IMG/VR virus record: IMGVR_UViG_3300042367_000228
Location: 248,001-312,000 of that record
Direction: 5' to 3' (one strand)
Length of the DNA stretch: 64,000 nt
Shown here: positions 41,766-54,762 of the stretch, piece by piece
How the letters are laid out: each line of letters begins with the position of its first letter
Position numbering within the stretch: the stretch's first letter is position 1
Notes under the pieces: generated by a model
Told to the model about the DNA's origin: nothing
The model's input: the letters and a program-made list of their open reading frames with translations, nothing else
Database searches by the model: none
Program-made: the position numbers and the translations under genes

Positions 41766-42545
41766 ATGATATTTATCGATAACAAATACACACGATTATA
41801 TTTTAAAATAATCAATCGCGCTAACTCTAAAAGATTGTCTGAGTATTCAGAAAATCATCATATTATTCCAGAATCATTTTTTATTAATCGATCTAGAAAA
41901 GGACCTGCCGGATGGCTTAATGGAAACCCAGAAGATTCATCAAATATTGTGTCGTTAACTGCAAGAGAACATTTTATTTGTCATTGGTTACTTATTAAAA
42001 TGACTACCGGAGATGCTAAACACAAAATGATATTTGCTATAACGATGATGAAACGTAAAGGCACAAATCAACAAAATAGATATAACACTATGATTACTAG
42101 TAGAGTTTATGCAATTTATAAGGAACAATCTGCTAAAATAAAAAGTGAGATATATTTTGGTCGAGTGCGGAATAAAACACTATATACATTTTGTCATTCT
42201 AATGGAACAGTAGAAACTTGCTCTATACTAGAATTATCTCACAAATATAATCTAGAGCGTTCTAGTATTGCGCATCTTGTTAAAAAACCGTTTGGAAAGC
42301 ATCATGTAAAAGGATGGTCTATTAACCATCCTATATTAGATACTGCTAGAAGTGTATTATATTCCGGCTCAGGAGGACCAAAGTATGATCATACTGTTTA
42401 TTCATTTAAACATAAAAGTGGAATAACTGAACAATGTACTAAGTATGATTTATTTTCTAAATATAATTTAGCTAGAGACGGAATATATTACATTTGTAAT
42501 GGTAAACAAAAATCATCACAAGGATGGTTTTTAGATATCAGGTAA
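41766..42545 (+). CDS. Free-standing HNH (MobE-like) homing endonuclease
   Basis: ENHHIIPES...NIVSLTAREHFICHWLL; two C-terminal HTH-like repeats ending KGW/QGW; convergent on the nrdB 3' end. Confidence 0.85.
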   Translation: MIFIDNKYTRLYFKIINRANSKRLSEYSENHHIIPESFFINRSRKGPAGWLNGNPEDSSNIVSLTAREHFICHWLLIKMTTGDAKHKMIFAITMMKRKGTNQQNRYNTMITSRVYAIYKEQSAKIKSEIYFGRVRNKTLYTFCHSNGTVETCSILELSHKYNLERSSIAHLVKKPFGKHHVKGWSINHPILDTARSVLYSGSGGPKYDHTVYSFKHKSGITEQCTKYDLFSKYNLARDGIYYICNGKQKSSQGWFLDIR

Positions 42546-43634
42546 CTCGGCGTAGTTAACGTCGCCGCCCATTACTCCTACTACATAATTTACACTCTCC
42601 GACTCTTGTAAAGCAGTTTGTTTTTTACTGGGGTCGGAATGTTTTGTAAACCACGGTATAGGTGTTGATTTAGGGGCTATTGCTTTATATTTAATACCAA
42701 CTTCTTTTAAAGCGTGTACTGCAGTATAGTCAACAAATTCTTTTAAGATGTTAGCGTTAAGTCCAATTACTGGACCTTTTAAGAACAAGTAGTCTGCCCA
42801 TTCTTTTTCCTCGCGGATCACATCGAGATACATGCTATAAACTTCTTCTTCACATTCTGCTTTAATTTCGGTAAAACGCGGATCATCTTTAATTACTAAA
42901 TTAATCATGTAAGCAGTCCATTCTTTATGTAACAGCTCATCTTGTAATATAAGTGCAATAATGTTACCGTTACCGATAAACAACTTATTTTCGACCATTG
43001 CTAAACTAGTAGCAAACGATACCATAAATCTAAATGCTTCTAATGCGTAACTTGCATGTAGCGCAAGCCAAATAGCTTTAATATGATCTCTTTCATCTAC
43101 AGGTAATCCGAGTTCTTTTTGACAGTTAAATATGTGTAATTTATTATAGTATCTACCGACACTGCTTGCCATGTCAACAATCGGTGTAGTATCATGAATA
43201 GTATTAAATATCTCTTTTGGAACATTATAGATATTACGAATAATATGACTATAACTGCGACTATGAATATTTGATTCATAGAATCCCCAATTAAGCATTA
43301 ACAGTTCTGCTTCAGGTACACTTACTACAGGTGTAAACACTTGGGTAGGCCCACGTCCTTGTAAGCTGTCTAATGCAGTTTGTCTTAATAAGTTGCTAGT
43401 AAATATATGTTTAACCGCATCACTAGCATCTTTGAAATCATTAGCGTCTTTGCTTAATGAGATCTCTTCCGGAGTCCAAAAGAATCCTCTAGCAGTTGCC
43501 TCGAACTTTTGAATACGTGGATATCGTACTTCTTCAAATCGTTGAATTGTAACTGTTCCGTCTAGAAACAATTTTCTAGACAGATAGTTAGTTTGTTCTC
43601 CTAGGTTATATTGTTCTTCACTCATAGCCGTCAC
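42531..43634 (-). CDS. nrdB: Class Ia ribonucleotide reductase beta subunit
   Basis: FFWTPEE, DSLQGR, ESNIHSRSY, LEAFRFMVSFA, DELLH. Confidence 0.95.
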   Translation of the reverse strand: MTAMSEEQYNLGEQTNYLSRKLFLDGTVTIQRFEEVRYPRIQKFEATARGFFWTPEEISLSKDANDFKDASDAVKHIFTSNLLRQTALDSLQGRGPTQVFTPVVSVPEAELLMLNWGFYESNIHSRSYSHIIRNIYNVPKEIFNTIHDTTPIVDMASSVGRYYNKLHIFNCQKELGLPVDERDHIKAIWLALHASYALEAFRFMVSFATSLAMVENKLFIGNGNIIALILQDELLHKEWTAYMINLVIKDDPRFTEIKAECEEEVYSMYLDVIREEKEWADYLFLKGPVIGLNANILKEFVDYTAVHALKEVGIKYKAIAPKSTPIPWFTKHSDPSKKQTALQESESVNYVVGVMGGDVNYAELPDI

Positions 43635-45151: not shown

Positions 45152-45703
45152 TTAACTAACTGTTTCATTTATGTAGTTCCAGTTTATTATTTTCCATTGA
45201 TTTTCTAAGTACTTTTTCTTGTCTGATTGATAGTCTAACGCCCATGAATGTTCCCACCAATCAACTAACAATACAATGTCTTTTTTAATAGCATGATTAG
45301 TTATTGTTTTGATCTTGCCATCTTTAGCAAGATAGACCCAACCACTGCCTTGTATGCCCATTGCTACTTTTAAAAACTCTTCTTTAAACTTATCAAAAGT
45401 TTTATAATGTGTTTCAATTAAATCTAAAACTTTGCCAACTGGTTTGTTTAAGTTGCCAGTTGACTCTTGATATTGTTGGAATAAGATATTGTGTAAAAAT
45501 ACACCTGCTTCATTAAACACAGGATCACCTTCACCTGCATTATAACGCTTTGCGTATGTTTTAGCAAGACGTTCATAATGATAATCTAATGTTGCTTTTG
45601 ATATAGCAGGACTTAACTCATCCATTCCGTATGGTAGAGGATCTATTTTTAATGATGCAGGTTTACCTTCAGTTATGAATTGCTTAATAAAACTATAGCT
45701 CAT
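45152..45703 (-). CDS. sod: Fe/Mn superoxide dismutase
   Basis: LPY...TLDYHY, LHNILF, QGSGWVYL, DWWEHSW. Confidence 0.88.
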   Translation of the reverse strand: MSYSFIKQFITEGKPASLKIDPLPYGMDELSPAISKATLDYHYERLAKTYAKRYNAGEGDPVFNEAGVFLHNILFQQYQESTGNLNKPVGKVLDLIETHYKTFDKFKEEFLKVAMGIQGSGWVYLAKDGKIKTITNHAIKKDIVLLVDWWEHSWALDYQSDKKKYLENQWKIINWNYINETVS

Positions 45704-46662
45704 AGCTTACAGGCCTCGCAGGATTCTTCATCGTCTTCAATAATTGCACTAGGTAAATCAACTTCGGCTTCTTCTTTACTACCTGTTTTATCAATTAAAC
45801 TATAGTAGAAAGTTTTCAAACCCCAATAGTGACCTAACATTAAGTTTTTAGCAATTAGTGTAGTTGGGACTTTTCTACCTTCAAAGTGTCTAGGTGAATA
45901 AAATGTATTTGTGCTAATACTTTGATCTACGTATGCAGCCAATACAGCAGCAGTTTTCAAATAACCTACACAATCAGTTTGTTCCCACATAAGTTGATAT
46001 TTGTTTTTCAATTTATGATATTCCGGAACTACTTGTGTAAGTGAACCAGCTTTTGATTCTTTAACTTGAATAAGTTGCATTGGCATTTCAATTCCATTAG
46101 TTGAATTAATTACAACTGAACTTGATTCTACTGGAGCTATAGCCATTTGAGTCGCATTTCGTACACCGTATTTTTTCATTTCAACACGCAATGGTTCCCA
46201 ATCAAGTTCTGGTGTAAAATCAGTCAATTCATTAACACCGTCTGCACGTAGTTCCCATGGAAATATACCTTGTCCGTATCGAGTTTTATCACTATCTAAA
46301 CATGGTCCACGCTCCTTAGCCAGTTCAACCGATATTTCAGTAGTATAAAATGCTAAATGTTCCATCCAGCTTTTAACTTCAGCAAGCATATCTGCGTCTC
46401 CGTATTTAAAATTGCGTTTAGCTGCCCAGTATGCTAAATTTGTAACTCCAATTCCTAATGGTCGAATTTCATCATTACTTAGTTTACTGTGGATTGACAG
46501 ATAATCTTGGTAATCTAAAATATTGTTTAAACTGCGGTGAAGAATACGACAAGCTCTGCGCATATCTTCCGGATTTCTAAAACTCCCCCAATTAATACTG
46601 CCTAAGGTGCATAAGGCTATTTTTGGAACTTTACGCACACATTCTTTTTTAATTATTTTCAT
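45700..46662 (-). CDS. nrdA: RNR alpha subunit C-terminal fragment (NrdA-b)
   Basis: IALCTLGSINWG, RPLGIG, AIAPVESSS, DQSISTN, KTFYY, CEACKL; preceded by non-NrdA MKIIKKECVRKVP. Confidence 0.93.
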   Translation of the reverse strand: MKIIKKECVRKVPKIALCTLGSINWGSFRNPEDMRRACRILHRSLNNILDYQDYLSIHSKLSNDEIRPLGIGVTNLAYWAAKRNFKYGDADMLAEVKSWMEHLAFYTTEISVELAKERGPCLDSDKTRYGQGIFPWELRADGVNELTDFTPELDWEPLRVEMKKYGVRNATQMAIAPVESSSVVINSTNGIEMPMQLIQVKESKAGSLTQVVPEYHKLKNKYQLMWEQTDCVGYLKTAAVLAAYVDQSISTNTFYSPRHFEGRKVPTTLIAKNLMLGHYWGLKTFYYSLIDKTGSKEEAEVDLPSAIIEDDEESCEACKL

Positions 46663-47425
46663 GATTTATTGTTCTTCCTATACGCCAATTTGTATTTTCT
46701 AAAAGATACTCATTAATAGACGATGAGTCAATCCTAATATTAGTGTACCCATCTGTTATCCATCTCCATTTTGAAGACTGTATTGATAACAAACTTTTTT
46801 GTGTTGGGCTTCTATAATGCGGGTTGTATTTAACTTGTTCAGTGGCAGTTAATGTAGCGTTAACTAAGTTAATCAAATCTGTATGATTTTTAATTCCTCG
46901 ATTAGATATCAATCTACTGCTAATAGATAGCTCAGATTTTAATACAGAATCAATTTCATTTCGAAGTAAATAACTACCGTATTTGAAATTTTCATGTATA
47001 TAATTAACTATAGTGTTAATAATATCGATAGCTGTAATATCAGGCCGAGCATTTCCGTTATTCATACCTGCACTTAGCTTACTTCTATTTTTACCCCATT
47101 CTATTAATTGTTTTTTAGAATATCGTTCTTTTGTGTTGCCGCCATCACCGCCACGGGTCATATTGTACCCGTAGCTAAACGTATCAAGCAAGTCTATATA
47201 ATATATTTCTTTTGATTTTGCATCAGATTGTGTACTACATTCATCTAATTTTTCAGTTATAATAGTATTTTCACCATATTTTCTAATTGCACGATGAAAA
47301 TATGTATCAGAACCGTTTCTACTATCTTGAATGTGTTCGTCTAATCGAACGTTAATATTTTTTTCAGTGTATCCTATGTATTTTTTGTTATTAATAGTGT
47401 GACAATATATATTATAAGTTTTCAT
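46649..47425 (-). CDS. GIY-YIG homing endonuclease inserted in nrdA
   Basis: NIYCHTINNKKYIGYT...RLDEH...FHRAIRKYG...E.YYI...GYNMTRGGDG; own late promoter CTAAATA at ~47446-47452. Confidence 0.88.
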   Translation of the reverse strand: MKTYNIYCHTINNKKYIGYTEKNINVRLDEHIQDSRNGSDTYFHRAIRKYGENTIITEKLDECSTQSDAKSKEIYYIDLLDTFSYGYNMTRGGDGGNTKERYSKKQLIEWGKNRSKLSAGMNNGNARPDITAIDIINTIVNYIHENFKYGSYLLRNEIDSVLKSELSISSRLISNRGIKNHTDLINLVNATLTATEQVKYNPHYRSPTQKSLLSIQSSKWRWITDGYTNIRIDSSSINEYLLENTNWRIGRTINHENN

Positions 47426-47463
47426 AAATATCTTCCTCTTGCTTGTATTTAGCAGAGATACTA

Positions 47464-48993
47464 CTACCCACTTATTAAAAGATTATCAATATCGTCATCT
47501 TCAGACAACTCTCGAACTTTCTTTTTCTCACCTGATTTTAATAATACCGTGTGTTCTCCTGCTAATGTTACTTCCTCTCCAGTGTCAAGTGTGAGTTTAA
47601 ATCCACCTTCATCGGATAACGAATTAAACGGTGCAGTTGGTAAAAGTATTTCGCAGCATAAATTACTTTGATAAATTGTATGCCATAACGGATCAAATGG
47701 TCCTTGCTTAATTACGTTATCTATAAAGACTAAGTAGATGCGCCCGGTGTCAGTTCGTTCTTTTAGGAGTCCTCCTTTGAATACTTCTTCCGCAGACATG
47801 GTCTTCTTCCGAACTCCTGTATTTTTTTCATACTGTAGGTACAGTTTTTCAAAGAGAGCTGTATCAGTGTAAAACGCTTCGTATAAGTCTGGAACTTCAT
47901 TAGGATCAAAAAATGTTATGTTTTCTTTGTTTTTAAATCTACGCCAAAAGAACGCGCTTAATACAACGCTGTAATCTAAATGACGCACCCGTGTTTCATC
48001 TGTGCCTTGATTGTTTTTAAGTACAATTAAGTCGTCGAACTGATAATGCCAAATCGGATATGTTACAGTAGCACTAGCATTTCTAATACCACCTTGTGAA
48101 CAGCAACGCAAGTCACCAAACCATTTCTTTAAAAATGGAATCATACCTGTGTGCATAATTTCACCACCGCGTATAGGACTTCCTAGTGCGCGTACACGAC
48201 CAATTTCTAAACCTATGCCAGCACGTTTGCTAGCATATTTTGCCATCATCTCGCCACTAGCAAATATAGAATCCAAATCGTCATCACTGCGTATGAGAAC
48301 GCAGCTGCTGAATTGTTTAGTTGGAGTTCCGAGCCCAGCAAGAACGGGTGTAGCAAGAGTAAATAAGCCATCGGATGCAGCATTATAATATTCCTTAATA
48401 TATTTCATTCTAGCTGCATTTGGTTCTTCCTTATGGAACACAGTTGCAGCTGCAATCATATACCTAACTTGTGGAGTTTCGTAAATGTCTTTAGTAGATC
48501 GATTACGGACTAAGTATTTCTCAATAAGCTGTTCAATTGCAGCATATGAGTAAGTTTCATCTTTTGAATGATCAAGCATGTCATTCATTTTGTTCCATTC
48601 TTCAGTTGAATACCACTCTAATAACTCTGGTGTGTATAATCCAACTTCGATGTTCTTTTTAACTATTGTAAATAGATGCGGTGGCTCGTATTGGCCGTAT
48701 ACATCTTTGCGGAGCATAGACAAACGCTGTTTGCCTGCAACGTATTGATAATTTGTATGACCTACATCTGGGTTGGCGTCAACATCAATTAAGTTAACGA
48801 TTGCTCGCAGTGTAATTTCGTCAATTTCAGATGTAGTAATATTATCGTAAAATTGTGGCTGGCTTTTAATTTCGATCATTGATTGACTAACATCGGCAAT
48901 TCCACTGCAAATCTTTGCAATCTGCGCCTGCCATTTGTCAATTGTTAGTTCTACTTTAGTGCCATTTCTTTTTGTAACTGTTATTTTATTCAT
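47464..48993 (-). CDS. nrdA: RNR alpha subunit N-terminal fragment (NrdA-a)
   Basis: ATP cone VTKRNG, QFSSCVL, CSQGGIRN, QSNLCCEILLP, then a ~47-aa non-NrdA tail. Confidence 0.93.
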   Translation of the reverse strand: MNKITVTKRNGTKVELTIDKWQAQIAKICSGIADVSQSMIEIKSQPQFYDNITTSEIDEITLRAIVNLIDVDANPDVGHTNYQYVAGKQRLSMLRKDVYGQYEPPHLFTIVKKNIEVGLYTPELLEWYSTEEWNKMNDMLDHSKDETYSYAAIEQLIEKYLVRNRSTKDIYETPQVRYMIAAATVFHKEEPNAARMKYIKEYYNAASDGLFTLATPVLAGLGTPTKQFSSCVLIRSDDDLDSIFASGEMMAKYASKRAGIGLEIGRVRALGSPIRGGEIMHTGMIPFLKKWFGDLRCCSQGGIRNASATVTYPIWHYQFDDLIVLKNNQGTDETRVRHLDYSVVLSAFFWRRFKNKENITFFDPNEVPDLYEAFYTDTALFEKLYLQYEKNTGVRKKTMSAEEVFKGGLLKERTDTGRIYLVFIDNVIKQGPFDPLWHTIYQSNLCCEILLPTAPFNSLSDEGGFKLTLDTGEEVTLAGEHTVLLKSGEKKKVRELSEDDDIDNLLISG

Positions 48994-49171: not shown

Positions 49172-50755
49172 TTAGGAAGTAGCGATATACGAGTAAGTTA
49201 GTGTACCGTCGTTACCTGAAATTGTATTAGTATACGAAACAACTATTGAATTGTTAACAATAGCTGCTGTAAATTTTAAAAGCATAGCAGTTCCGGAAAT
49301 ACCAGTACAAGTATAATCATCGGAAGAGTTAATAGAAGGAGGAGACGCAATTAATGAAATTTGTCCTTGTCTAATATAATTCCCGTTAAAAATGTAATTT
49401 ATAGTATATGACATAAATCCAGCGACTGTTCCGGTGCTGTCTGTTTTTAATGGTAATCTAAATAAATCTACACTTTCTACAGATTGAGCAATATCTACAG
49501 TTAAAGGTGTACTAGTATATACTGCAGATCCTGATACTTCTGGAACGTATTGTAAAGCTGATAACGGATCTGATAACGCTATTGATCTATCAGATGTGAT
49601 ACTTGAATTATAATTTCCAAGTTGGCTAAAGTAAATTTGCGGAACTGTTGACTCTGTATCGCCACCTTCTCCAACATTAGTTAAGTTACAATTTATAACC
49701 GTGTTCTTAATACTATTATCGCTGTTAATTGCATGCGCTATAATATTATCAAATTTATAATTAGAGATATTAATATTAGATGGGCCGTCAGATACTAAAT
49801 CAACCCCTAAAGAAAACCCAGTATGTGCTGTCGAAATAACACCATTAATAAAATTAATATCTGTAGATGCATTGCCTATAAACACACCGCAGAAATAATT
49901 GTTAATTACAACATTGTCAAATATAATGTCAGACGAAGTTGTAGCTAATAAACTTGAAATACTAATTCCTTTATTATCAGGTCTAGACCCAGAATCCCAA
50001 GTTCCGATAATTTTTATATTTTGAAATTTACTATTACTAGTATTAGCAAGATCTAAACCGATAGTTGCAGTTGTTTCTGTTGACTGAATAGTAATATCTT
50101 GAATATTAATATATCGTGGATTAGTAAGCGGATAAGATGATCCAACATCTGATATACATCTAAATGCAGTTTCTAAACCAGTATATTGGATAATAGTTTT
50201 ATCTATGCCTGCTCCGATAATTGTAGTGTAGCTTGGAATAGTAATTGCATTAATTGTTTTAAAAATGCCAGCTGGCATTTTTAGTATAACTCGTCGTTTA
50301 ACTCCTTCAGATGTATTAGAGAACGATTTAATACCACTGTTTGCAAACAACTGAGTAATTGCACGTTGAATTGCACTTGAATCATCAGTGATGCCGTCGC
50401 CTTTTGCTCCAAAATCATAGACATTTACAGTATCATCTAAAATATTCTGTAATGATCGAACTACTGGAAAACTAATTGACGGTCCGGTAGTTATTAACGT
50501 ATCAGATAATTTGTAAGTATGTTCTAATAATGATATTAATCCAGTTCCGCCTGATCCAGATATAATATCTTTAGATGTTAAAATTTTTGTATTACCTACA
50601 GTAGGTGCGCCTTCTGATACAGAACCATTACCGATGTACAGTTCTTGAGAATCAACTGCCCATCCTAATTCTCCAGATGCTAACTGTGGAAACCCGGGGC
50701 CGGTTCTAGCCTTTCCTCTTCGTATTTGAATTTTTGAAATTTGATAAACTGCCAT
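49172..50755 (-). CDS. Virion protein with pectate-lyase-like beta-helix
   Basis: PQLASGELGWAVD N-terminus; VYDFGAKGDGITDDSSAIQRAI. Confidence 0.75.
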   Translation of the reverse strand: MAVYQISKIQIRRGKARTGPGFPQLASGELGWAVDSQELYIGNGSVSEGAPTVGNTKILTSKDIISGSGGTGLISLLEHTYKLSDTLITTGPSISFPVVRSLQNILDDTVNVYDFGAKGDGITDDSSAIQRAITQLFANSGIKSFSNTSEGVKRRVILKMPAGIFKTINAITIPSYTTIIGAGIDKTIIQYTGLETAFRCISDVGSSYPLTNPRYINIQDITIQSTETTATIGLDLANTSNSKFQNIKIIGTWDSGSRPDNKGISISSLLATTSSDIIFDNVVINNYFCGVFIGNASTDINFINGVISTAHTGFSLGVDLVSDGPSNINISNYKFDNIIAHAINSDNSIKNTVINCNLTNVGEGGDTESTVPQIYFSQLGNYNSSITSDRSIALSDPLSALQYVPEVSGSAVYTSTPLTVDIAQSVESVDLFRLPLKTDSTGTVAGFMSYTINYIFNGNYIRQGQISLIASPPSINSSDDYTCTGISGTAMLLKFTAAIVNNSIVVSYTNTISGNDGTLTYSYIATS

Positions 50756-54127: not shown

Positions 54128-54762
54128 CTTAAACCTGCGATAGTTAACATTGCTATTAATTCTTCTGATTCTTTTATAGGTGTTGGGTGTACAACATTAC
54201 GGTGATTTCTACCAGAATTCTTTTCAAACTTTTTATCAACTACATCGTTAATAAAGTCATCAGTTGGATCACCACTAATGTCTTTATTCTCATGTGACGC
54301 TATAAGATCTGCATCATCTTTGTCATCAAGCATCTCTTGCATAGTAGAACCAATATTATCAGGTAATTCTATTTCGGAACCAACTTTAGGTAATTGTGCT
54401 TGTTGCTGCTGCTGAGGAGCAGGTTGTCCAGGCTGTTGTTGTCCCGGTGCAGGTTGTTGTCCGTTAGCAACTGGAATTTGTCCTTGTTGCGGTTGTCCAT
54501 CTTGAGGAACTTGTCCTTGTTGTGCAGGTGCAGGTTGTTGCCCTGGTACAGGCTGACCCATTGTTTCGTTACCTTGTTGACCTTGCGGTGCATTTGCAGG
54601 ATTAAGGTTTAATGTTGATATGTTAGGTGTATTTGGTTTTGGCTGAATAGCAGCCGGTGTTGTAGTTATTTTAGTAGCACCGTCAGCTGACGAGATTTCA
54701 ACTTTTTCGGGGTCACTTTGTGTTACTTTGTAATTACTTTCTGTAATTTCTTTAATCTTCAT
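54124..54762 (-). CDS. Q/P-rich low-complexity protein with MKIKEITE tag
   Basis: PGQQ repeats; ends ESEELIAMLTIAGLR. Confidence 0.7.
   Translation of the reverse strand: MKIKEITESNYKVTQSDPEKVEISSADGATKITTTPAAIQPKPNTPNISTLNLNPANAPQGQQGNETMGQPVPGQQPAPAQQGQVPQDGQPQQGQIPVANGQQPAPGQQQPGQPAPQQQQQAQLPKVGSEIELPDNIGSTMQEMLDDKDDADLIASHENKDISGDPTDDFINDVVDKKFEKNSGRNHRNVVHPTPIKESEELIAMLTIAGLR

Follow-up and report, generated by a model that had tools for sequence, protein, structure and literature searches.

How can a phage tolerate a selfish endonuclease gene that breaks the loop of an essential active site? The question is raised by the class Ia ribonucleotide reductase (RNR) gene nrdA in a 64,000-nucleotide (nt) stretch of DNA, hereafter the window, which comprises positions 248,001 to 312,000 of IMG/VR record IMGVR_UViG_3300042367_000228 and whose own numbering is used throughout. 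The record is a 372,016-bp virus with direct terminal repeats, that is, a jumbo phage, and near-identical sequence is present in many lake-water metagenomes. In the window, nrdA lies in two open reading frames (ORFs) around a GIY-YIG homing endonuclease gene, all three on the minus strand: nrdA-a (47464-48993, 509 amino acids, aa), the endonuclease gene (46649-47425, 258 aa) and nrdA-b (45700-46662, 320 aa). NrdA-a ends in an acidic tail of 45 aa and NrdA-b begins with a basic head of 13 aa. We argue that this is a fractured nrdA that carries non-splicing remnants of a split intein, with tail and head probably serving as a non-covalent clasp for the two halves of the enzyme.

A divided enzyme and the limits of the insert

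Together, the two ORFs encode the parts of one class Ia enzyme. Pfam places the ATP-cone (PF03477), the all-alpha domain (PF00317) and positions 1-222 of the barrel (PF02867) in NrdA-a, and positions 223-522 of the same barrel in NrdA-b. When aligned to Escherichia coli R1, NrdA-a covers residues 4-457 (E 2e-135) and NrdA-b residues 458-760 (E 6e-61), with the insert between G457 and E458. The residues of catalysis and radical transfer (C225, N437, C439, E441, C462, Y730/Y731 and the C-terminal Cys pair in E. coli) are all identical and are divided between the two chains: NrdA-a carries N444, C446 and E448, the equivalents of N437, C439 and E441, and NrdA-b carries C18, the equivalent of C462, along with the YY pair and the C-terminal CxxC. 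An active class Ia enzyme requires NrdB as partner, and the gene for this small subunit was identified among the window's ORFs (42531-43634, minus strand; PF00268, E 7.5e-43). Domains, catalytic residues and the NrdB partner encoded in the genome all assign NrdA to class Ia. An initial annotation, made from the letters and their ORFs alone, had described nrdA as split by a GIY-YIG gene; the ORFs and the domain and family matches (Pfam, PHROG, alignment to E. coli R1) confirm that description.

The limits of the foreign material are set by intact relatives. A scan of IMG/VR with NrdA-a returned 80 loci, and nrdA is continuous in about 70 of them (61 distinct extein sequences), where residue 14 of NrdA-b follows straight after residue 464 of NrdA-a. 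By this comparison, the foreign material consists of the tail (NrdA-a residues 465-509; 47467-47601), the endonuclease gene and the head (NrdA-b residues 1-13, missing in intact relatives; 46624-46662). The extein parts, as delimited by Pfam and by the alignment to R1, are residues 1-464 of NrdA-a (47602-48993) and residues 14-320 of NrdA-b with the stop codon (45700-46623). A second IMG/VR scan, with an alignment of tails as query, returned 46 loci, every one of them an nrdA with the tail at the identical site. All tail-bearing examples are metagenomic, and tblastn with the tail found no match in 50,697 cultured phage records.

The endonuclease encoded between tail and head matches PF01541 over the cut-off (E 4.5e-9) and PHROG 314, a homing endonuclease family (E 1e-21). 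It has a catalytic domain at about residues 3-82 and a separate C-terminal domain (residues 120-252) with a presumed role in DNA binding; the two domains, the free-standing gene and the empty alleles of relatives are the features of a GIY-YIG homing endonuclease. It is 64% identical to the occupant of the same site at locus L087. Its C-terminal half (46670-47068) is 37% identical (E 5e-28) to that of an HNH-like endonuclease at another nrdA site (L133:3450-3857), and one C-terminal module is thus common to different nuclease domains.

The arrangement of the three genes leaves little space for RNA elements. The double stop TAG TAG that ends nrdA-a (47461-47466) is followed by a spacer with a Shine-Dalgarno-like GAGGAAG ahead of the endonuclease ATG (47426-47460), the distance from nrdA-a to the endonuclease gene being 38 nt, and in-frame read-through beyond nrdA-a meets more than 30 stops. 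The ATG of nrdA-b lies 14 nt inside the 3' end of the endonuclease gene. Flanked by just these 38 nt and an overlap, the endonuclease ORF has no group I intron core around it, and Rfam gave no ribozyme match between 45000 and 49500 at E up to 1, in line with the earlier remark that there is no room for one. No significant RNA hairpin was found in the spacer (RNA fold z-score -0.69), and a promoter scan was at chance level. Metatranscriptomes held just nrdA-a fragments of relatives (~90% identity) and no contig that skips the cassette, and are uninformative on the transcript of the window.

Tail, head and the absence of splicing

The tail has a net charge of -5 and a pI of 4.5. Taken as a single sequence, it matches the Pfam intein-splicing model weakly (E 0.07), and 15 of 16 tails match positions 51-92 of PF14890. 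A profile built from the 16 tails was searched with HMMER hmmsearch against 1.84 billion (1.84e9) representative proteins at a library-wide E of up to 0.001, and returned 58 significant matches. NrdA-a tails account for five of these and repeat proteins for two; the majority of the others fall in the block-B region of inteins, in a single register. They include the split-intein N-fragments (IntN) of UvsW-like helicases and TerL-like proteins, matched over a single stretch at E 5e-7 to 1e-3, and many are the C-terminal ends of proteins, that is, natural split-intein N-fragments. A block A (of the C-x-x-x-D/E-T/S type) lies ~55 aa upstream in 29 matches according to a separate profile of the N-half, and in more by eye, and in all ten matches checked a Pfam Hint or Intein_splicing assignment spans the matched stretch. 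Each of the four split-intein loci inspected has an N-fragment together with a C-fragment that ends in Asn followed by Cys, and in three of them an endonuclease gene lies between the fragments (L135 is without one).

The reciprocal search led to the same place. A profile of 16 full split-intein N-fragments, run against 793 six-frame ORFs of the window, matched only the NrdA-a tail (E 2e-10, the next best being 0.3). The tail aligns to positions 53-95 of this 98-position profile, with positions 1-52 absent, and it ends where split N-fragments end, at profile position 93-94 in Pfam (about position 93 of PF14890). Alignment and shared end identify the tail, by homology, as the second half, or block-B half, of a split-intein N-fragment. 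The initial annotation had called the tail acidic and block-B-like and had named similarity to Hint domains as a point to check; both the charge and the profile searches agree with it. Within block B, the His is invariant in the 16 tails, and the Thr position is occupied by Pro or Ala. A word-indexed search of 5.8 billion proteins, limited to tail residues 462-509, gave no match. AlphaFold2 models the tail alone as four strands and a short helix (predicted local distance difference test score, pLDDT, 79). We also considered descent from the inteins that reside in nrdA directly before the thiyl-radical Cys (NL|C), which is unlikely, given that the tail profile misses their block-B region and finds the helicase and TerL split inteins.

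The head is basic, as had been claimed (net charge +4, pI 10.0), and stands where a split-intein C-fragment (IntC) would have its first strand. Its start (M-K-I/V, then Lys-rich) resembles real C-fragments, namely the IntC starts of L129, L133 and L135-L137. As evidence standing alone this likeness was discarded, the best scorer being an unrelated Q/P-rich ORF at 54762; the proposed IntC origin of the head, which at 13 aa is too short to establish it, rests on position and context, not on statistics. In its layout the locus matches split inteins, with N and C parts on separate ORFs that flank a free-standing endonuclease gene and an end at the canonical split site, and homology to the Hint domain is found for the tail only.

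The residues of the splice junctions are missing on both sides. The insert starts with Phe, without block A or an N-terminal Cys, Ser or Ala; blocks F and G, with His-Asn and a Cys, Ser or Thr at +1, are likewise absent, and the residue after the head is Lys. The real C-fragment partners end in VSN|C or VHN|C. Of the splicing residues, all but the block-B His are gone, with no Cys1, His-Asn or +1 nucleophile, as the initial annotation had noted. A total of 58 aa without splice-junction residues excludes splicing on sequence grounds, and tail and head should not be able to carry it out. The locus thus lacks three defining features of the intein family and would not belong to it functionally, while its sequence marks it as derived from that family.

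Selection, mobility and the case for a clasp

Over 20 distinct split lineages, the ratio of non-synonymous to synonymous polymorphism (pN/pS) was 0.22 for the tail and 0.31 for the head, compared to 0.19-0.24 for the exteins, with synonymous sites saturated (pS ~0.75), and 17 tail positions are invariant across 16 variants. Purifying selection acts on tail and head as strongly as on the enzyme body. They are also retained irrespective of what stands between them. Five different endonuclease occupants were found: three GIY-YIG-type classes that Pfam or PHROGs identify, a fourth (L010 type) of similar size that is unmatched in both and GIY-YIG-like by its N-terminal motif alone, and a fifth that is a 363-aa homing endonuclease on the opposite strand. 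The endonuclease has decayed to a 75-aa remnant at L101 and L109, to a broken gene at L115 and to a 160-nt remnant at L133, with tail and head still kept, and L011 and L102 are free of any endonuclease, the nrdA-a stop overlapping the nrdA-b start. The occupant is replaceable, or can be lost, while tail and head remain.

The split state requires at least 4-5 changes on the extein tree, and the nrdA of the window is placed, with strong support, inside a set of intact alleles to which it is 92-95% identical. With L004, the closest of the intact alleles, it shares 96-100% of nucleotides at codons 211-435; the figure drops to 62-68% at codons 436-480 and is ~75% up to about codon 570. Such a drop is the signature of the recombination that introduced the cassette; the co-conversion-like tract, delimited by a sliding-window codon alignment and an amino-acid profile, spans 46306-47688 on the minus strand. 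Between loci with the same endonuclease class, the DNA of tail plus head differs less than that of the exteins (distances of 0.06 vs 0.23, 0.09 vs 0.27 and 0.00 vs 0.18). Since tail-plus-head DNA tracks endonuclease class, tail, endonuclease gene and head behave as one cassette. The cassette also persists: a split allele identical to that of the window was found in lake metagenomes from 2016 to 2024. In a few loci (L087, L013 and L133), heads that end in ESG or AGG go together with tails containing G-T-R/Q-K-K, accompanied by E-N-D-D in the tails of L087 and L013 and E-E-D-D in that of L133, across different extein clades and endonuclease classes; this could be tail-head covariation or shared cassette ancestry.

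These observations suggest a mechanism in which a mobile cassette, made up of the codons of the 45-aa tail, a stop, a homing endonuclease gene, and the start and codons of the 13-aa head, would have entered an otherwise intact class Ia nrdA at the junction of the G464 and Lys codons. The acidic tail would meet the basic head as in the charge-driven capture of natural split inteins, with pairing of beta-strands, and this would aid the non-covalent assembly of the barrel halves into a working alpha subunit. The active site would then be composite, C446 and E448 coming from one chain and C18 from the other. The endonuclease would spread the cassette into intact alleles, and the clasp would render each invasion harmless.

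Complex prediction is consistent with such an assembly. The two full chains gave an ipSAE of 0.91, compared to 0.36 for the best control; in calibration, the mark was reached by 51 of 78 solved complexes and by 2 of 108 mismatched pairs. The predicted interface takes in all 13 head residues together with tail residues 465-471 and 496-502, and is very large beyond the tails. From selection, persistence and this predicted interface we infer that tail and head would act as a clasp, and with it that they would bind each other and that assembly or activity would depend on this. The activity of the endonuclease and its target are likewise presumed.

Several points weigh against this reading. The ipSAE score may largely be memory of intact RNR structures, and the prediction yields no residue pairs, hence no direct contact between tail and head; the clasp is therefore put forward as the best-supported inference. 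The large native interface may by itself suffice here, by analogy with the halves of the Aeh1 enzyme described below, which associate without their tails. When the N-termini of 108 window ORFs were scored for likeness to five real IntC starts, the head came 35th, and in so AT-rich a genome many N-termini look equally IntC-like, so that of the earlier description of the head its basic charge stands and its likeness to the first IntC strand is not statistically supported. For the tail, Pfam Big_4 was matched by 11 of the 16 tails about as weakly as the intein model, and the tail profile found no intein among PDB sequences, only chance-level ribosomal L23 and ataxin AXH. Foldseek gave no meaningful match of the isolated tail model in the PDB (best E 2.3), a comparison that is uninformative for a modelled 45-aa fragment without its partner. 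Finally, the insertion site is without a nucleophile; the intein pieces therefore did not originate in place from an intein that once spliced there, and their route to the nrdA site is conjecture.

The main rival explanation comes from phage Aeh1, in which nrdA is arranged as NrdA-a / MobE / NrdA-b, with an HNH endonuclease, tails and no splicing (Friedrich 2007; Crona 2010, PMC3045599). As in Aeh1, the window has a class Ia nrdA split in the loop equivalent to C439-C462 by a free-standing homing endonuclease gene, and unspliced halves with extra C- and N-terminal tails of opposite charge. The initial annotation held that Aeh1 is split in this region; the loop is indeed the same, but the site is not, the split here lying ~8 residues downstream. 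The endonuclease also differs (GIY-YIG here, with four other classes in relatives, compared to HNH), no RNA hairpin hides its ribosome-binding site as one does for mobE, and tails of the window type, unlike those of Aeh1, travel with the endonuclease as a cassette in many lineages. The tails of Aeh1 are dispensable for formation of the heterodimer, and are needed for the dimerisation of heterodimers and for activity (PMC3045599). Intein-derived, selected tails might work in the same way here, in dimerisation of heterodimers, in NrdB binding or in the geometry of the composite active site, and not in the association of the a and b chains. The shared loop and the very large a/b interface predicted outside the tails speak for this, as does the finding that tail-less Aeh1 halves form heterodimers that neither dimerise nor stay active (PMC3045599). 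Yet the tails here, compared by eye with the two Aeh1 peptides that PMC3045599 gives, show no sequence relationship to them; the Aeh1 tails had no database match, whereas the window tail is Hint-derived. The polarity of charge is reversed, the relatives of the tail in split inteins are known to bind each other, and the head lies entirely within the predicted a/b interface. We regard a role of this kind as unlikely. Given the reversed polarity and the part that the Aeh1 tails play in dimerisation and activity, the exact role of the tails here could differ.

Tail and head could instead be functionless relics that hitchhike with the endonuclease gene, the halves assembling unaided. A large native interface and the tail-less association of the Aeh1 halves (PMC3045599) would allow for this, but relics would not be expected to match the enzyme body in pN/pS at saturated synonymous sites, to keep 17 invariant positions in 16 variants or to outlast loss or decay of the endonuclease, and a truncated or frameshifted tail occurs at no locus, which makes this account improbable. 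Very improbable, in our judgement, is a convergent resemblance to inteins, the tail being a generic beta-hairpin peptide that arose from random DNA, as was first proposed for Aeh1: the segment is short, without a PDB sequence match, and its Pfam matches are weak and shared with Big_4, yet dozens of matches are significant library-wide in a single Hint-domain register, the C-terminus of the tail falls on the natural split site, and the matched loci share the architecture of a fractured phage gene with an endonuclease. Conservation could also act on the DNA, for instance on expression signals of the endonuclease or on target-site immunity, considering that tail DNA abuts the endonuclease start and head DNA overlaps its 3' end by 14 nt in the window. 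This is hardly credible in view of the codon-structured substitutions (pS 0.75, pN 0.16), the lack of a significant hairpin, and the conservation of tails beside unrelated endonuclease genes, one of them on the opposite strand, and beside none. That the pieces splice by an unconventional route, or that the RNA is spliced, has nothing in its favour except the invariant block-B His. It is contradicted by the absence of Cys1 or Ser1, block A, block F/G and a terminal Asn, by the Lys at +1, by 58 aa where a minimal Hint domain has ~130, and, for RNA, by the lack of a ribozyme in Rfam, by the start and stop of each ORF and by tails that are in frame and conserved as protein; its probability is negligible.

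Related fractured genes and the place of the locus among them

Fractured genes with complete split inteins and with GIY-YIG or Vsr-like endonucleases were described earlier (NrdA-1 to -7, gp41-1, NrdJ-1 and IMPDH-1; Dassa 2009, PMC2677866), and the split inteins of NrdA-2, NrdJ-1 and IMPDH-1 show the polarity of acidic N and basic C (PMC2677866). The window shares with those loci the order of gene half with IntN, endonuclease gene, and IntC with gene half in phage-like DNA, and in both sets there are loci without an endonuclease (one in the earlier set). The inteins of that set are complete and splicing; here, 45 and 13 aa are left, with the block-B His as sole catalytic residue, and the insertion is not at their NrdA site (NL|C) but at G|K, 18 residues downstream. 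In natural split inteins such as Npu DnaE and gp41-1, assembly by capture and collapse begins when opposite charges bring a basic IntC to a disordered acidic region of IntN (Shah 2013, as cited in PMC11766414). The pieces retained in the window have matching charges, as in natural split inteins, and the tail maps to the C-terminal half of IntN; unlike in those inteins, the pre-folded N-terminal half and the catalytic C-terminal end, which receive the captured parts on collapse, are absent, so that any fold of tail and head would be half a Hint domain at most. The retained parts would correspond to the capture regions of Npu DnaE. A further case of an essential phage gene split by a homing endonuclease gene is the T4 topoisomerase gp39/gp60, split by mobA, where tail-like extensions of complementary charge are present (Crona 2010, PMC3045599). 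The gene is a different one, no intein likeness is reported, and the gene 60 bypass has no counterpart in the nrdA of the window. Two kinds of locus were thus already known: an nrdA in halves with tails, and genes fractured around an endonuclease with complete split inteins. The locus described here is the missing intermediate, with the architecture of a fractured gene, an intein cut down to two association pieces and a site that cannot be spliced.

The tail profile also matches tails without the N-terminal intein half in other fractured genes. A DNA polymerase gene, polB, is interrupted by an endonuclease gene between a tail of 41 aa and a head of 13 aa, at a site where most relatives are intact, and a radical-SAM gene has a tail of ~43 aa, an HNH endonuclease and a short basic head. 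The polB and radical-SAM tails are without the block-B Thr and, unlike the nrdA tail, also without the His, and all three kinds lack the aromatic residue that precedes the K-x-V motif in real inteins. The similar lengths suggest that the truncated module itself spreads. Tentatively, at slightly less than an even chance, we see in this a distinct class of phage fracturing cassette, in which a half-Hint clasp, made of a tail of ~43 aa from the second half of IntN and a 13-aa head where IntC would start, surrounds an exchangeable homing endonuclease gene.

The split polB loci (L130:1261-1380; L138:3625-3745; L139:3683-3800; L140:3623-3740; L143:3625-3745) have a peculiarity of their own. The ORF of the 13-aa head enters the catalytic Y-x-D-T-D-S motif and stops within it. 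Relative to intact alleles, the loci have 5 extra nt (TGACA or TAACT), which give a stop right behind a Thr codon and, 5 nt further on, another Thr codon with GAT TCN after it; three of the five lack a start codon at the junction. With a +5 ribosomal hop the motif would be restored exactly, which looks like a miniature of the T4 gene 60 bypass. That bypass, too, adjoins a homing endonuclease in a split gene. An initial reading of the L130 head as keeping part of intein block F was withdrawn, as intact polB alleles show this stretch to be extein.

Some of these phages combine truncated and complete inteins. In certain relatives (L103:2400-3700; L096:300-1500; P0005) the same NrdA-a has both the tail and a complete 138-aa mini-intein at NL|C, and further inteins stand before S299 and S307, bringing the nrdA insertion sites in the phage group to at least four. 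At L133 (1202-5427) nrdA is in three pieces. NrdA-a carries a real split-intein N-fragment at NL|C, and an HNH-like endonuclease gene comes after it; next is a 96-aa ORF in which the C-fragment, 19 aa of extein and the tail are joined, and behind it 160 nt left over from an endonuclease gene; the last piece is NrdA-b, which has a head. At L131 (3001-5929), a radical-SAM-like gene (CxxxCxxC) with a complete intein inside the cluster motif is split further downstream by a module of the truncated kind, with tail, HNH endonuclease and head.

In the window, nrdA and nrdB have an Fe/Mn superoxide dismutase gene (45152-45703, minus strand) between them, immediately downstream of nrdA-b, which is unusual in a phage RNR operon. 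Upstream of nrdA-a, a 527-aa protein (49172-50755, minus strand) matches the Mtd N-terminal domain and a pectate-lyase-like beta-helix weakly, below threshold; it is probably a tail fibre or depolymerase.

That such tails are perhaps degenerate remnants of split inteins was speculated, without evidence, by Crona et al. (PMC3045599), and our full-text literature searches found no paper demonstrating it. The speculation of 2010 now has a sequence-supported case with dozens of natural variants. For annotation, it follows that split genes of this kind should not be called pseudogenes. If the wider class is real, a non-splicing cassette would need no nucleophile at its site and could colonise new essential genes, as with tails of 41-45 aa in nrdA, polB and the radical-SAM gene and with short basic heads (13 aa where intact alleles define the boundaries), and half a Hint fold would be an autonomous, naturally evolved heterodimerisation module. 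The charge-complementary pair of 45 and 13 aa, in which no splice-junction residues are needed or left, could serve the design of split proteins. The locus suggests that evolution can separate the association step of split inteins from their chemistry. For the phages themselves, a selfish endonuclease breaks an essential active-site loop and is nevertheless tolerated, because the cassette would supply its own non-covalent repair.

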